A DNA stretch of 64,000 bases, from contig JALMLS010000390.1 in the NCBI GenBank assembly GCA_038496445.1, positions 1-64,000 of the forward strand, given 5' to 3'. Position numbers and translations under genes: made by a program. Source of the stretch: Trichosphaerium sp. ATCC 40318. Taxonomy: Eukaryota; Protista; Tubulinea. Under the pieces are notes generated by a model. The model was not told the DNA's origin, did not search any database, and was given only the letters and a program-made list of their open reading frames with translations. Each line of letters opens with the position of its first letter. The stretch's first letter is position 1. Shown one piece after another: positions 37,329 through 61,099 of this stretch.

Positions 37329-40300
37329 ATGGCAGCTGCTGCAAGTTCAGGACAGCTTTGGGTCAAAGTAATAGGCGCTCGTGGTGTAACATCAAAGCAT
37401 GATGGTATTTAGATTATTGTAACGCTATTTGGTGTTTAATGGTTTTACATAGTATACTGCAACCTGCGTATTAACGACAGCTCACCTAAGCCTATAAAAT
37501 TAAGGACAAAAGAAGTTCCAGCTAAAAATGGCAAACCGCAGGTATTGATGTCACAAAGAGTTGATTCGAATTCGTTTAACGCGTATACGTAGTGGAATGA
37601 AGAATTTCTCCTCAGTGTTCCAGATATCAACAATTCTTTGCTTATGCATGTTTGGGGTGATAAAATTATGCGAAACAACCAGTTTCTAGGTGAAGTAACA
37701 GTGAGGTGCAGTTTATTTCTCCTTTAAATGACATAATTCCTAAATAACGTTATAGCATGGAGACAATAACGTTAGGACAACAACAAGAAATGTGGGTCCA
37801 GCTAGAAGTGAGTTTAATAGAAAACAACCATTTTAGGCTTTTTTAACCTTTAAAAGGGTGACGTGAAAGGAAAACCAGGTGAATTACAACTCCTTGTTCA
37901 TTTCACAGCTTGTCCGGTCCCACAAGCGTAAGTCATGTCAATATTTTACCTAACTAATGTTCTGTCAAGGCCAAAACAGCGTGTTAACATGCGTTTCCCG
38001 TCATTTCGTCTTATTTTGGACCGTGTGAGATACTGGCCTGGTGAAGTAAGTGTCTTCTCGCTTCGTTTAAACATCGTTTTGTTCGGTTGTAAGTAAAATT
38101 GTTGAAGCTAAATGTCAACGTAGACAATTCGTGGAGCTGTAATGTTCAATGTTGGCAGACCTTATAAATGCCGTGGTGTAAGAGGCACGTGACAATTTGT
38201 GTTTATGGATTTATTAATGGATATTTTTAGTGAAGTTTATTGGAAAGCAGCGAACGCATTGGACAGAATCAGAGGTATGAAGAGAGCTTTTTTTACATTT
38301 TTTTCTTTTTTTTTTTCTATTTCAGTTTTAATTTTTTTTCTCGTAGGGAAGTGGTGATAATAGACGTACAGTTACTTATAGTGAGACTGTATTTTTTTTC
38401 CACAACAAATATACGCTTTATGGAAACGAGAAGAAAACTGTATGTCCTGCAAAATGCAAATTAAAATTGCTTTATAGTGGTTTTCTTGGTTTTTTCTATT
38501 TTGTTTATTTTAAGCTCTTACACGTGTTATTTAGATGAAGATCGACTCTGGCAGTTATTACTGGCCATTTGAGTTTACTTTACCTCTAAACTTGCCGCCT
38601 TCATTTAGACATGCACACGGTTGGACAGAATACAGTTGCAGTGGTTATGTCGATATTCCAATGAAAATTGATAAACAAGTTAAACAAGTATGTCAACCTT
38701 TTTTGTTTTGTTTATTGGACTGTTTTTATTCTCTTGTTTTGTGATCCTATGTTTCTAATAGTCTTCTTTAGGCTCTTGTTATACATATTCAGTATGCTAA
38801 TTTATCACCTCCTGCCATCATGGTTAAACAGAAACACTATGGTACGCGTGTAATTTGAAACAAAAAAATTCTTTTAGCAATCGCTTACGTACTCTTAACT
38901 AGGTAAGAATAAGGATCCTATCACAATGTCGGCAGTACTTGGTTCTAAAGTAAACTATATCGGAGAAGAAATGTCCGTTGATGTTGTACGTTTCTTACCA
39001 AGGAAACTGTTTGTAGTAAGTTTGTGCCTAATTTGTTTTCAATAGAAAATTGATAATCAGTCTCAAAAGAAGATTGGTAAACTTGAGGTAGCACTTAAAG
39101 GAAAGCTACTCACATATGGTACACGTGGGGCAACAACAGGTGGTCATATTTATGGAGGGTACACCTTTTATTTTGAAACAAAAACAGCAAATTTTCATTT
39201 TTTTTTTGTTTTCTTTTCTTGATTTGGCTGACAGGTGTTGTTATAGACGTAGAAAAATCCGTAGATGGAAAGTTTGTGCATTCTCTAGTACAATAAAGGG
39301 AGCGAATATATTCCCTGTTCTTCCTGGAGAAACTAAATCTGGGTTGTTTAAATTTCAATTACCTGCAAACATGCTACCATCTCTTCCTCATGATATTTCT
39401 CCGATTGTTAAGCTTGATTGGGTTCTTAAAGTAGCTGGTGATGTTAAAGGTATTTTTATAAACATTTAGTAGTGATACTAATCACGTGATAAAAGGTTTT
39501 ATGAATGGAAAAGTTAAGACAAAGACTGCAGCACTTATTGGTTGGCGTATTCCTCAATTTCTCCAAAGTATCTCTCAACCAACAGCCGTATGTCATAACA
39601 AATTGTTATAGTGTAATATATTCAAACACTAATATTTGTATTATTAGGCTATGGGTATTCCAGGAGAGATTCGTGTCATGCAACAACGTAAGCATAAAAA
39701 ACTAATTTGGATTGTTTAAAAAGTTAAAGTTCTAATCTTATTTTCCTTCCAGCTGCTCAAGTTATACTCCCACCTCCTGTGATCAATTACAATCAAGTTA
39801 GTCAAGTGAATGAAGGTGTTTATAATTACGAAAATGCAGCACCAGTACAGGTACACTAAAAGTTTCGACAAACCAATAAATTTCTTTCGTTCGTTTGTTG
39901 GCTTACAAAAAAACTTAGTGGGGTGAAGGTCCTTACGTTCGCGCTGAGAACCAAGTAGTTGTCGATCAAGCTACCGATTATAACGCTGTACGTATTTAAT
40001 TTAAAGCGATATTGGTTTAATAAAATTGTTTTAGCTTGTACAACAATACGGAGGGACTGATGTTACTGCTACTCCACAACGTGGTGCATTTGCTCAAGGA
40101 AGCCCTCAACAACCTAGACAGCAACCACTTCAAGGAGGCCATCCTCCACAGCAACAAGGTTATGCTCCTCAACAAGGTCAACCTCCTGTACAAGGTGGAT
40201 ACCCTCCACAAGGACAACCTCAAGGCGGTTATCCACCACAACAGGGTCAGCCTCAAGGCGGCTATCCACCACAACAAGGAGGCTACCCTCCACAACAGGG

Positions 40301-40664
40301 ACAACCTCAAGGCGGCTATCCACCGCAACAACAAGGACAGCCTCAAGGCGGCTATCCACCACAACAAGGACAACCCCAAGGCGGCTATCCACCACAACAG
40401 GGTCAACCTCAAGGCGGCTATCCACCACAACAAGGTTACCCTCCACAGCAACAGGGTCAACCTCAGGGTGGTTATCCACCACAACAGGGACAACCTCAAG
40501 GCGGCTATCCACCACAACAGGGACAGCCTCAAGGCGGCTATCCACCACAACAACAAGGTTACCCGCCACAACAGGGACAACCTCAAGGCGGCTATCCACC
40601 ACAACAGGGTCAACCTCAAGGCGGCTATCCACCACAACAAGGACAACCCGAACAACAACAGTAA
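37329..40664 (+). CDS. C2 domain plus arrestin (N and C) domain protein with QGGYPPQ repeat tail
   Basis: C2 [22 protein letters not shown]; arrestin [48 protein letters not shown]. Confidence 0.88.
40100..40660 (+). repeat. Coding tandem repeat, about 33-36 bp unit (caaggcggctatccaccacaacagggtcaacct; [11 protein letters not shown])
   Basis: More than 15 GYPPQ-type units directly visible. Confidence 0.95.
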
Positions 40665-42474: not shown

Positions 42475-44888
42475 TTAAGCATCTTGATAACGAGTTGATG
42501 TATAAAACTGATAAACCTTTTTCGATAATGAAGGACCAAGCCTTCTTCTGGAAGGACCAGCTCTGAAATCGCTTATCAAGTTCTCTTTGTTTTTTATAGT
42601 ATACATTGATCTATACGCTAATAATAACTCACTTGGTGTTTTATATTGTTCTATTATAGCTGCTGCTTTATCCCCAGACATACCACGTATCTTCATGAGC
42701 TGTTTTGCAAAAACATTTGTTACTGTTAAATAACTACTTTTTGCACTAAAAGAATCGAACTGTTCTATGCTTAAAAGTATATCATGACACTTGTCTTCTT
42801 GTGTAGCGGATGTATCATATTTCTGGTATGTACCAACATACTTTTCGCTTAATATACATGTTATATCTGATAGATAATCGAGTGTTTCTCCCATTGTTTT
42901 TGTTTGTTTAACAAAGAAATTATTAACAACTTGTGTTGATACGAGTGTTGTCTCCACTACTTCTTTAGATACACAAGCACGCCCACGTTGAGAAAAGAAT
43001 TTATCCATATTACCCTACAGTATAAAAAGTAAATATCAATACCACACGTGACATATTACAAAAGGAACCAGAGCTCAAAAAAATTGTTTGTTTACCTCAA
43101 CAAGATAAGTAACATTACTTAACCCACATCTAGCTAGCCGGTACTTTTGTTCTTTATACCTTCCGTCTATAATACTACTACAAAGATCCGCTATAGCAAC
43201 AGTTATTAATACATAACAGCTTACAAAAAAAACAAAGATAATGTACGTACAAAGAAGTTTTCGTTCTACAATAAAGTCAAGCACAAGCTCCATACCACTG
43301 CTCGTTTTACCAACCCACATAACATCACCTAAAGCGAGCTGTCTTACGCTTACATCTACGCCCATAGAAACTAGTTTATCACTAATATACGTCCTGTTCT
43401 TTCTTGACTTTACTTCTCTGTTATCAAGGAGTAACATAACTTTCGTTATTTTATGCTTTGAAATGCCACACCCTGGTCGGCGTTGTATTGTTCTTTTTGT
43501 AGTGTTTACACTTCCAATAGGTGATAACGAAAGGTTAGGAGATATAGGTGATAACGGTAACCTTGCTGGAGGAGCACGAGGACTTTTAGCTTTCTTTGTT
43601 CGTCGTGGTTTTGATGAAGGTGTCTTTGTACTCGCTCTTGGCGCACTCTTTTTACTACTGATGGGTGAGCTTTTCGGGTACGCCATACGTTTTGGTGGTT
43701 GCATATTTACGTCTAATCTATTCATTGAAGAAATTAGCTGTTCATCGCTGTCCTCAGAGCTCCAGCCATCGTTCAGTAAAGGAGATCTGATGTAAGCTCC
43801 ACGACGACGTTTCTTCCTATTGTACGCAGCCTTCCTTTTTGGAGAAAGGTTACTACTTGAAGTTGATTTCATTGCACGAGAAGATTTAGGTTTTGATGGC
43901 TTTGACTTTTTTTTATGAGGTGAAGGCTGTTTTGTTGTCTCTTCTGTTGACAACCCTTCAAAGAACTTTTGTTCTTTTTCGATCACGTCCATGATACCCA
44001 CACCCTTTAATGTAATGAAATACATCCTATTTTCAACCCTATTTTAAGTACGTTAGTACCACGTGTATGCAAAAAAAACCACGTGATTATTTATCAAAAA
44101 AATGGGAAAAAAATCTTGTTTTTGGTCTTACATTACTAGTTCTTTCTTTAGTAGAGTCTTCATAGAATTCCAAGCAGTGTAATATGAATCACCATCTCTT
44201 TCAAAGGATGACTCACAAAAAGGCCGTGCAAGATCAATAAGACTTGCTTTTGTAAGTCCAGATTCGCCACGAGTTTCAGCCCTTAATAGACGTGTTAAAT
44301 AAACGAACGTGAGTGAAACTAATATCAGAGATGTATACCCAGCCATTAACGAGGAGAAACGAGGTGAAGGAAGGCGGCTTTTTTGAAATTTCGAAGATTG
44401 AAAATCGCGCGTTTTATTGTACCTTGAAAGTGCCAATAACATGGCCCAACCACCTGATCTATACCGTGGCATATATTCTCCTTTTTTTTTAACGCGTTTA
44501 GGCGCTTTTTGCTTCTCAGTGTTTGTTTGTTCTTTTTCTTTGTTTCTTACGGGTTTTCCTTGCGTGTTTGTGTTATCAGTAGTATTACCAGCTTTTCTGT
44601 ATTGTTCTAGTTTTTTTGCCAGTTTAGTCACTGTGCCCTTGCCAATACCATCTACTCACATGAGATTATACTTTCACGCGTGTAGTACCCAAAACAAGCG
44701 CTTCTTCTGGCTCTGTAATTTGTAACGGATATTTGCTCATTGATGTCTTTGCCTATAACCTGTGAGCGCTCGCTTTGTATAATTAACTGTACTTTACGGT
44801 AAGTAGATGCCAAATGAACTTTGTTTTGGACGCGCGCTAGGCGTTCCATTTCACCGAGAAATTTAACAAACAGAGCGTTGTTGGACAT
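42475..44888 (-). CDS. MUS81: Crossover junction endonuclease MUS81
   Basis: N-terminal HhH (LDGIGKG), winged helix (YMPRYRSGGWAMLL, YYTAWNSMKTL), ERCC4 (LDNRE, LGDVMW, IVERK, IIDGRYKEQK), C-terminal HhH2. Confidence 0.95.
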
Positions 44889-51512: not shown

Positions 51513-51877
51513 CGCGTTGACTAATTTGGAAAGAGGTTAAAACAAAAACCTTTTAAAATGACGTCAGACTCTTCTCTTGTTGTAATGATAATAAAAAAAC
51601 AATTTCAGAAAAGAAAATTAATACGTCTGTCCTTATGGGTGAACTGACGGTTTTGCTTTTTTTTTTTTGGATTTCTATCCACAAATTTGACAGGACCTTT
51701 TGCGTATATTCTGATGTTATATTTTTAGACACAGGTTACTTACTTGCTTCAAAGTGCCGAAAAAGGTTTTTTTGTTAACCTGTGTTCATTTTTTTTCGCA
51801 ATTTTTCATTGTTTCTGATAAACATTCCGTGTAAAAGCAAAAAAAGATTGTCGTATAAATGCAATAGATAGCAAGTG

Positions 51878-53795
51878 ATGGTTCTTATACGCGAGTTTCG
51901 CGTGGTTATGCCATTCTCGCTTAGAAATTATAAAAAAGGTACAACATTGGTATACAGTAGTGCTGTAGTTATTTGTGGAGCTATACACCGAAAATGATCA
52001 GAGTAAATGCGCGTTCTCACAGAATTGAAGGAGCTCAGCATGGAGCGATTACAACAGCAGCTACAGTCACTTTGGGATCAAAAGGAGGTTCCGGAGTAGA
52101 GGTAATGGTAAAAGAACCGTGGATTGATCAAAGCGGTAAAGAAGGTGTTTACGCTAAGCGTGTGTATCATTTTGAAGAGTAAGCATACTTTTTTGTAATA
52201 TTGATAGTTTCTTAACCTTTCACCAGTTGGGTACCAGGATGGCTAAAACTGCTACTACCAAAGAACGCTCTGACGTTGCAGGAAGAGGTACTAATTTTTG
52301 CTGAACAGTTTGATAAAACTATTGTAATTGGCTGATACGCTGTTTAAATAGATGTGGTACAGCTTCCCTTATTGTAAGACTGTTATGACGTAAGCAAGCT
52401 TATTTAGTCTTCTTTTTATTTTTCCTTAACGAAAAGGGTTACTCTTTCGAGTACTGACGTAATGTAGCTCACCATTTCTTGGTAAAAAACTCAAGTTCAC
52501 GATAGAGTCTTTTCATGTACGCAAAAACTTTTTACTCGCTGCTAAAACTAAACCGTGAAACACGGCAACGAAGTACACGCGCCTGCGAGATCTTTTTTTT
52601 GGGATTTACCTAAAAAGATTTAGACAAAAATCGGCGCTTGTCATGAAGATAATCCAATGAAACTAGATCCAAAAACTTACAAAGCGCGTGGGAAAGTAGA
52701 TTTCGTATCCTACAAGCGATTACTCAGCTTTACTTGAATTTCACTTCAACTTTTTCTCACGAGTTTTTTTTGGTTTCCTTGACAGTAAACGATTGATATA
52801 ACAGAACCCCTCGAAGATTCTCGTGGATTTGAACCGCAGATAGACATGTGTGAAGATTGTCTTAATTCTAAAGAGATAGGACCACTAACAGATGGTTGGG
52901 AGAAGGAGTTTGGAAAGATATGCGCTTACAAGCTCGTAACTGTTGAGGTACATTTGATCTTGATTTTTTTTTTTGTAAAAAGGGTCTAACCTTTGCTATC
53001 AATAGGTTAAAGGTGTTTGGGGTTTTCAGAGTAAAATCGAGAATTATTTAATGAATTTTCAACGACAAGTGTTTCTACGATTTCACAAGCAAGTGTACGT
53101 AACCACATATTGCTGTAAAGCCTCGGCTACAAAAACTTGACTTACGCGTACATAGATACTGTTCGGCAGATGATTGGATTGGCATGTCCAGCAAGGAAAT
53201 TGATCACTACGAGCAAGATCTCATCATAAAAATGAATAAATGCTTTGAAGGAGAGCATAAGGTAGAAAAGAAGCCATCTCCAAAGCAATCACCAGAAACA
53301 AGCCCAAAGAGGCAAAGACCAAAATCACAAGCAAATGATCTTAATTCAGCCAAGCGAAAAACATTGACAGGTTCGATTAAGGCAAGGGGTGTTGCCGTTA
53401 AGAATAGGGCTGGAGAGTTGACTACTCGTGCTGGAACGTCTATACGTACGCGTGCTGATAGTATTAAGAACGCTGCTGGAGAGTTCAAACTGAAGGCAGG
53501 AGAATCTTTTACTGGTCTCAAAAACCGTGTTATAAAGCCACATGAGAAGCTAGAAAAGCACGAGAAGCAAGAAAAACCGCGTGCACGACGGAAAAAAGGA
53601 AAACGTAAAGGACGTAAACCAAGAACAAAAAGGCGTCCTAAACCACAAGGATCAACTGATGATGAGTACTATAGTTGTGAAGAATCGTTTGCATCTGAAG
53701 CAGAGTTTGAAGATTTTGTTTCTAAAAATCACGTCTTTTATGCAAATGGAAGAGGAAAACATAAGGCTAAGAATAAGAAGCATCAAAGTCAGTAG
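51878..53795 (+). CDS. Phosphatidylinositol transfer protein (PITP, START-like fold) with long basic C-terminal extension
   Basis: MVLIREFRVVMP, GSGVEV, YAKRVYHF, FPYCKT, IESFH, CAYKLVTVE, FHKQVYC..DDW. Confidence 0.92.
52705..52791 (+). other. Putative U12-type (minor spliceosome) intron with GT-CG ends
   Basis: 5' end GTATCCT; branch TTTCCTTGAC at 52774-52783; removal restores the conserved KVDF|IDIT. Confidence 0.75.
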
Positions 53796-54048
53796 TTACT
53801 ACAAAATTTTTTTTTATTCTTCCTCAACAGAAACCACGAAAAATATAGTATTGTAAAGCAAACCACACCTTACCTTCTTGTAACATAGACAACTTGATAA
53901 AATATATTGTAACTTAACTTCTGTCTACTTAGTGGTTACCTTTTGTGCATGAGTTTTAATCTTTCATCGTAATCAATGGTGCGCCTTGATTCACAAATTC
54001 TAGTAAGATGTAAACCTCAAGGTCCCAATCTTCGTTCCAAGAAATTAA

Positions 54049-58772: not shown

Positions 58773-61099
58773 ATGCAGCTAGTGTTCGCTAGTATCCTTT
58801 TTTTATTTGTGCCCATAATAATAGCTCAAATGGCACCAACTCCACCTCGTGGTTGGAACAGTTATGGCACGTTTTTTCAGCAACAAACAACTTTCTCAAA
58901 CTTTTTTTAACTCTTACTTGATTTACAGATAGTTTTACGTGGATTGTACCTGAGGAAGCATTCCTTGAGAACTGCGAGTGGATGTCAAAGTAATTGTTTT
59001 TCGTTTTTATGCAAAAAGCTAACTAGAACACTTACAAAGAAACCTACTTCAACACGCATACGAGTATTGTGTAATAGGCAAGTTTTTATTCTTTTTTAGA
59101 GTTCCTCTATAACGGTTCTTGTTAAACGTGTTGTATTAGATTATCTGTGGTATCAAGATCTTAAAAACCAGACTTACAATTACATTGACGACTATGGAAG
59201 AGTACGATCAAACTTCAACAACAAAAACGTGATACTTTGCTTTTTTCTTGATTACTACTTTTTGCTATATGTTTTATTTAACATTGGCTTTGATATAGCT
59301 CATTCCAGATCCAAACAGGTGGCCTTCAAGCAAAGGGGCCTTGGTTTTAAACCAGTGGCTGATAAAGTACACGCTATGGGTACACCCTTACTACTTATAG
59401 AGTTTGTGAATGATGTTAATCTAGGATTAAAGTTCGGTATTCACATTATGAGGGGCATCTCAGATGCAGCTGTAGTGCGTGTTAAACCTTGTTATTACAA
59501 CGTAGAGAGTTGATAAAAGAATGTAGGCTGCTAATTCTCCAATAAAAGGAACTTCACTGCACGCAAGAGATGTTGCACTAGTAAATGAAAAGTACGTTAT
59601 AAAAACTTGTTTCTAAATTACCAGTATCACAATAGATGCCCATGGAAGACGGACTTTCAAAGTGTTGATGTCACGAAACCTGAAGGACAGGTAAAATGGC
59701 ATAAATAAAAATGTAAAACTAACACGTGATTGTGTTAAGATGTTCTACGATTCCTTGTATGAACAATATGCATCATGGGACGTAGATTTCATAAAAAACG
59801 ACTGTGTATGATAAACAATCCTAATATCTTGAAATGCTGCCTATTGATGCAAATTCTTTAGATGTTTGGCGGCCAATTTGTTCCTGATCAGATCAGAGGT
59901 TGGTAGAAAATAACCATACCAACGCAACTAACAAACATTTTTGTTAACATTAGCGGTATCTAAGGCCATATCTAACTCTAAGGCACATTAATCAAATGTA
60001 GACATATTGCTCTTAATATTGACATTAACTAGCGCCCAATGGTTTACTCCTTATCAGCGGGAACAGCAAAAGAGACTGAGATTGCATCAGCAAAAGAAAT
60101 ATATAAAATTGTTAACATGTATCGGATTGCAGGAGATGATTGGTAGCTGTCTTCTGGCATACCAATCTGTTAACTAGTTGTTTAAGGGATGTCTGGAAGA
60201 ATGTTCTAGATCATTTTGATATTACAGCAAACATGACAAGAGCAGGGCTGACAGGAGCTCAAGGAAAAGGTTTGTTTTATCAAAAATAATAAAAGAGCTA
60301 GCATCTAGCACTTAACACTTACCAAGATGGATTATCGTGGCCTGACTTGGACATGCTACCTTTTGGATGGATCACTAGCCCGGGCAGTACCAAGGTGCCA
60401 ATTTAATTAAACTTCTCTTTGAAAGAAAAGGACCTATTTTCTGTAGATTAAGGGCGCTTAAAGTTGGATATTAGGGCCCGTACAGAAACTGCAGTTTGAC
60501 ACATGATGAGCAAACAACCCAAGTACGTATGGTAGACTTATTATTTAATCCAACGGCATAGATGTCTCTCTGGTGTATTGCAAAGAGCCCTCTAATGTTT
60601 GGTGGTAAGAACAAGATTAGTAAATAACTTAATCACTTTGAGCTGACAGGTGACATGCGTAAGATGGATCCGTTTACATTGAATATATTGACGAACAAGG
60701 AAATGCTTAACATAAACGCATATTCAAAACAAAATGAACAAGTGTGGAAGAAAGGGTAACCAAACCAATTTAAATTCAAACTGTTTCTCACTCACCAACC
60801 CGCAATAGTAACCAAAGGCTTTGGAAAGCTGTCCACAATGATACAGTATATGCTGCTATGTTCAATACAGGAGAAGAAGCACAAGAATTCAATCTCATTT
60901 TCAGTGATGTGAAGCTACAGGTACAAACTTCTATTTTATCAAAACCAAACACAACTTAATTGTAACTCATGTCTTAAAGGGATCTTGTCATCTAACAAAT
61001 GTATGGAGCCAACAATCACTAGGGTCATTTACAAATGAATATACAACTTCTCTTAAACCTCATGAAAGTCAAGTCGTAGCAATAAGAGACTGTCATTAA
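58773..61099 (+). CDS. Secreted GH27 glycoside hydrolase (alpha-galactosidase family), one apparent frameshift
   Basis: PPRGWNSYD, IDYLWY, DDYGR..PDPNRWP, GLKFGIHIMRG, WDVDFIKNDC, YRIAGDDWD, WPDLDMLPFG, SPLMFGGD. Confidence 0.92.

Follow-up and report, generated by a model that had tools for sequence, protein, structure and literature searches.

A probable U12-type intron with GT-CG termini in a phosphatidylinositol transfer protein gene of the marine protist Trichosphaerium

Intron 6 of a phosphatidylinositol transfer protein (PITP) gene from Trichosphaerium sp. ATCC 40318 combines a donor and a branch-site motif typical of the minor spliceosome with a 3’ end that reads CG, raising the question of whether the intron is indeed removed from RNA at these ends and, if so, by which spliceosome. 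The gene lies on the forward strand of a 64,000-nucleotide stretch of AT-rich (∼37% G+C) eukaryotic DNA, referred to here as the window. A sequence-only reading of the window had proposed a U12-type intron ending in CG. Here, we compare the locus with RNA contigs, protein records and known minor introns, and conclude that intron 6 most likely belongs to the minor-spliceosome (U12-type) introns, and within these to a rare non-canonical subtype with GT-CG termini.

Gene structure and the RNA junction of intron 6

The joints of RNA contigs, the spliced translation and Pfam together define the PITP gene (Table 1). Its spliced translation is identical to the MMETSP Trinity peptide P0002 (440 aa each) apart from a single substitution, H125Q. 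P0002 matches the Pfam family IP_trans (PF02121) with an E-value of 5e-59 over residues 2–249, covering profile positions 1–243 of 246, and the score of 200 bits, compared to a curated cut-off of 21.3, places the product among the class I phosphatidylinositol transfer proteins. Dictyostelid PITP1 is 40% identical to P0002. When the protein is aligned to 11 further PITPs, the junction across intron 6 (F146|I147) falls directly before the conserved IDI motif without any gap.

Table 1 Features of the PITP gene and of intron 6 (window positions; distances are counted from the putative branch adenosine, A52782)
Feature	Position	Strand	Description or evidence
PITP gene CDS	51878-53795	+	9 exons, 440 aa; RNA contig joints, spliced translation, Pfam
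PITP exons 1-5	51878-51938, 52031-52178, 52227-52287, 52352-52389, 52468-52516	+	RNA contig joints
PITP exons 6-9	52624-52704, 52792-52947, 53006-53094, 53156-53795	+	RNA contig joints
Intron 6 of PITP	52705-52791	+	87 nt, phase 0, termini GT...CG, U12-type signals
U12-type 5’ splice site GTATCCTAC	52705-52713	+	core GTATCCT perfect
Branch-site motif TTTCCTTGAC	52774-52783	+	consensus match; putative branch A 52782
TGA, in frame on intron retention	52735-52737	+	P0004 terminates there
Bypassed AG	52784-52785 (TAA at 52786-52788)	+	2-3 nt past branch A; used by no contig
3’ terminal dinucleotide in use, CG	52790-52791	+	RNA joint GT..CG; CG read in L002
Possible 3’ site AG	3 nt from A52782		would be too close
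Possible 3’ site CG	9 nt from A52782		in frame; site used
Possible 3’ site TG	13 nt from A52782		frameshift
Possible 3’ site AG	22 nt from A52782		would be too far; frameshift

Contigs from four RNA-type runs were aligned to window positions 51800-53900. Those of two runs from separate studies, X1 (2015) and X2 (2023), are each joined across all eight introns. Seven of these joints are GT..AG, while the remaining one connects 52704 to 52792, skipping 87 nt with GT..CG termini. No letter at this joint fits on both sides, so the cut cannot slide to another dinucleotide. The X1 contig, with a depth of 132, agrees with the window over 1467 nt with 0 mismatches. The sole DNA-like run, X12, matches the window at 53374-53524 only, and a metagenome scan for the 3’ end of intron 6, with NN at the dinucleotide, gave 0 matches.

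When exon 7 was compared with 1.84 billion representative proteins, there was one match only, P0001, which derives from the organism’s own transcript, the JGI-assembled transcriptome contig L001, and whose cluster has three further members (P0002, P0003 and P0004). L001 carries the F|I junction, with intron 6 spliced at the same ends, so that excision is seen in X1, in X2 and in the separately assembled L001. The related contig L002 (1698 nt, 87 nt longer than L001) encodes both P0003 and P0004 and keeps intron 6: the match of bases 506-831 to window 52624-52949 is 100% and takes in GTAAACG|ATTGAT. Since the CG is thereby read in RNA, the C at 52790 does not come from an error in the assembly. 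The sequence-only reading fares well against these data. The junction that it predicted is exactly that of the transcripts, its joined product GKVDF|IDITE is reproduced, the in-frame stop that it expected on retention is the TGA at which P0004, the read-through product of L002, ends (...GKVDFVSYKRLLSFT), and the choice that it posed between C and A at 52790 is settled by L002, which has no AG at 52790-52791. CG is the one 3’ site seen in the contigs, a kind of data that would miss degraded alternatives, and the out-of-frame products of other 3’ sites, if made, are probably degraded.

Spliced RNA does not reveal the bases of the intron itself, which leaves room for hidden heterozygosity: the spliced mRNA would come from an allele ending in AG (a GT-AG U12 intron), while the CG allele would be splicing-dead and seen as retained-intron RNA. 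Indeed, a CG-bearing retained-intron contig exists (L002), and the culture contains at least two alleles of the PITP gene, as codon 125 in exon 6 (CAT in GCT TGT CAT GAA) encodes H in the window, L001 and L002 but Q in P0002. However, the window’s own haplotype, H125, occurs in spliced RNA, both in X1 and in L001, whereas the Q allele should prevail in spliced contigs if H125 transcripts stayed unspliced and tended to be degraded. Neither does any X1 contig cover a retained intron 6, and both L001 and L002 also retain ordinary intron 1, which indicates that unspliced RNA is simply present in the library. Short-read phasing across the 57 nt from SNP to junction is weak, so the haplotype argument is of moderate strength and a small share of the probability stays with the hidden allele, which we regard as unlikely.

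Positions 1-357 of both L001 and L002 correspond to window 51822-52178, intron 1 included. The open reading frame of this form begins MIRVNARSHRIEG within intron 1 and does not include the first 21 PITP residues; the form is probably unspliced pre-mRNA and not a real isoform.

Splice signals and the spliceosome involved

Intron 6 reads GTATCCTACAAG...GGTTTCCTTGACAGTAAACG, followed by ATTGATATAACAGAA, and its 3’ end is AAACG. Compared to the extended U12-type donor [G/A]TATCCTT, positions +1 to +7 are perfect and +8 is A where the consensus has T. Near the 3’ end, TTCCTTGAC at 52775-52783 agrees with the branch consensus TTCCTT[G/A]AC, from which we infer A52782, 9 nt before the last base of the intron, to be the branch adenosine. 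The sequence between the branch site and the 3’ splice site, AGTAAACG, has no polypyrimidine tract. These features, together with the non-AG end, support the U12-type assignment in the sequence-only reading, which had also placed the donor, the branch motif and the AG with its following TAA correctly. Splicing at that AG would bring the TAA into frame, and in all frames of the downstream exon translation would end after a few codons. The AG that comes next downstream, at 52803-52804, would shift the frame. With GT-CG the intron has neither of the canonical pairs of termini (GT-AG or AT-AC) and falls in the non-canonical subclass, although termini are no defining criterion of the U12-type class (PMC3584512).

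The combination of signals occurs once in the window. [AG]TATCC[TC] occurs at 18 sites, including 14 strict RTATCCT, which is approximately the chance expectation, but only for one of the 18, the donor of intron 6, do the next 400 nt contain a perfect TCCTTRAY. The perfect 5’ core GTATCCT and the perfect branch site TCCTTGAC form the sole such pair in the window, and both lie at ends of an intron defined by RNA. The three nearest other candidate U12 donors, read individually, lie in coding or non-intronic sequence, and no other U12-type intron was found in the window. An Rfam scan of the whole 64-kb window at gathering thresholds found no snRNA or any other Rfam family.

One of these three candidates, GTATCCTTTTTT at 58792, lies within signal-peptide coding sequence (MQLVFASILFLFVPIIIAQ...PPRGWNSYG; window 58775-58870, forward strand) of a protein that we take by eye to be alpha-galactosidase-like. 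A U12-like donor inside such a coding sequence means that the donor motif by itself over-calls U12 introns in this genome.

The PITP gene’s remaining seven introns (window 51939-53155) are 48-107 nt long. Their donors (GTACAA, GTAAGC, GTACTA, GTAAGC, GTACGC, GTACAT and GTACGT) start with GTA[AC]N, as GTAC(G/A/T) or GTAAGC and not GTAAGT, and never with GTATCC. CTRAC-like branch sites (CTTAAC, CTGATA, CTGAC, CTAAC, CTTGAC) are found 10-20 nt before YAG in these U2-type introns, whose architecture is yeast-like. Intron 8 has the branch site ACTTGAC, and because U2-type branch sites of this gene resemble CTTGAC, a branch match is less discriminating here than in animals. It is the donor that bears most weight in assigning intron 6 to the U12 class.

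This background of loose donors (such as GTACAA, GTACTA and GTACAT), with strong CTRAC branch sites a short way from the 3’ end, is also what might support a U2-type origin of intron 6, with a donor that resembles the U12 type by chance and a CTTGAC branch from which a yeast-like second step picks a non-AG site, the proximal AG being too close. Neither T at +4 nor CC at +5/+6 is found in any of the seven U2-type donors (0/7), however, and the full match to the U12 branch consensus reaches well past CTRAC. A U2-type second step would also be expected to take the AG at 22 nt. U2-type introns with the same terminal dinucleotides and with RNA-seq support are annotated in Drosophila, but all eight stand in the similar-alternative-splice column (FlyBase ‘Rule-Benders’, Table 3, PMC4528330), whereas intron 6 carries U12 signals and lacks a usable AG in its vicinity, its AGs lying solely at 3 and 22 nt and being unused in contigs. 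We therefore consider a U2-type intron improbable, to a greater degree than the hidden allele.

Non-canonical junctions are generally enriched for artefacts, such as an error in the genome base (the true end being AG) or a deletion by reverse transcriptase or assembler that mimics an intron. Here, this explanation is effectively refuted by the identical CG in the independent RNA contig L002, by a junction recovered in two studies and by three assemblers, by an in-frame product that fits the conserved PITP alignment and by the lack of any direct repeat at the intron ends. Using the 12-mer similarity heuristic for reverse-transcriptase artefacts and its cut-off of 0.916 (Larue et al., bioRxiv 10.1101/2020.10.12.336362), the intron 6 junction scores 0.58, and microhomology is absent. 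Non-spliceosomal excision of the IRE1/HAC1 type was dropped as the intron ends fit U12 signals perfectly.

Choice of the 3’ end and comparison with known minor introns

Returning to the U12-type assignment, the skipping of one AG and the use of a CG further on could be accounted for as follows. The GTATCCT of the donor would be bound through base pairing by U11 and later by U6atac, and the branch-site motif by U12, with A52782 bulged out to act as branch point. Distance from the branch, and not AG, would then be the main determinant of the 3’ splice site, with the first AG so close as to be out of reach and the second too distant. The G at 52791 would preserve the partnership between first and last G of GT-AG introns, with C at -2 being tolerated. 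Counting against such tolerance, Dietrich et al. reportedly found in 2001 and 2005 that the penultimate A is important in human cells.

Several aspects of this proposal have precedent. The U11/U12 di-snRNP recognises donor and branch site jointly, with the 3’ site at a short and fairly fixed distance whose optimum in human is 11-13 nt; non-canonical termini support U12 splicing, and the choice of U12-type 3’ splice sites is error-prone (PMC3584512). The 9 nt of intron 6 are below the human optimum, which counts against the proposal. In GTATCCT, TTCCTTRAC, the absence of a polypyrimidine tract and the short distance from branch to 3’ splice site, intron 6 resembles canonical GT-AG U12 introns (Turunen et al. 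2013, PMC3584512), from which it differs in this shorter spacing and in its CG end.

Such an end is not without parallel. GT-CG minor introns number 46 of ∼73,700 (0.062%) in animals and 5 of ∼23,300 (0.021%) in plants, and GT-GG and GT-TG are also among conserved minor-intron termini (Larue & Roy 2023, NAR, PMC10639083, Table S1). Like these, intron 6 has a U12 donor and branch site, a 5’ GT, a last G and a base other than A at -2; unlike them, it belongs to a PITP gene of a marine protist and has a bypassed AG 3 nt past the branch A. The GT-CG intron is thus a further case of a known rare subclass, and the sequence-only reading, while right that the intron is real, implied more novelty than it has. 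Because the animal and plant tabulations already include GT-CG minor introns, minor splicing need not be viewed differently. What the locus offers is a clean, RNA-validated natural case in which a proximal AG is skipped and a CG used, illustrating the notion that distance selects U12-type 3’ sites and that the penultimate base is only loosely constrained. Gene predictors that accept AG only would break or truncate the PITP gene, and probably others in the genome, so annotation should permit non-canonical U12 ends.

Another protist, Physarum polycephalum, has ∼1,000 non-canonical U12-type introns, most with A at -2 (bioRxiv 10.1101/2020.10.12.336362). Short introns and non-canonical ends are common to both, and the Physarum branch motif precedes the 3’ splice site by 9-12 nt, a short distance window into which the 9 nt of intron 6 fit. 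In contrast to the classical branch motif of intron 6, however, that of Physarum is altered (TTTGA) and matched by a compensating U12 snRNA, and its common odd termini (AT-AG, AT-AA, GT-AT and AT-AT) keep the A at -2 where intron 6 has C. It is conceivable, though we hold it doubtful, that minor splicing in Trichosphaerium is relaxed or expanded as a second case beside Physarum, with 3’ sites defined by a distance of ∼9-10 nt and a terminal G and with any base at -2. Introns with GT-CG, GT-TG and GT-GG termini would in that case be frequent throughout the genome, and a lineage-specific donor consensus GTATCCTAC might be accompanied by matching changes in U11 and U6atac.

No intron was found at the orthologous position in four of four PITP genes, from a lycophyte (Diphasiastrum), a charophyte (Klebsormidium), a brittle star (Amphiura) and a dictyostelid (Cavenderia), in each of which one exon spans the site; an Oppia locus was left out of this comparison owing to incomplete mapping. 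The position of intron 6 therefore reflects either a lineage-specific gain or loss in those four lineages.

Further features of the window

The PITP protein has a C-terminal extension of ∼180 residues (window 53250-53795). One stretch of it, RARRKKGKRKGRKPRTKRRPKP, is rich in lysine and arginine, and segments of the form xRAGE/KAGE recur as loose repeats. These segments might form amphipathic helices, and the extension could be a membrane-targeting tail. A homologue search with the C-terminal exon (212 aa) gave zero matches in the size range 117-371 aa, and an exact look-up of the last-exon open reading frame (203 aa) returned no record.

Elsewhere, window 40150-40650 contains a tandem array with periods of 33, 66 and 120 nt, which accounts for the long overlapping open reading frames on both strands there; its units would give Gln/Gly/Tyr/Pro-rich repeats if translated. 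Two long open reading frames on the reverse strand at 42475-44025, with the motif LALGDVMWVGK...IVERK, resemble, by eye, exons of a structure-specific endonuclease of the Mus81/ERCC4 type.
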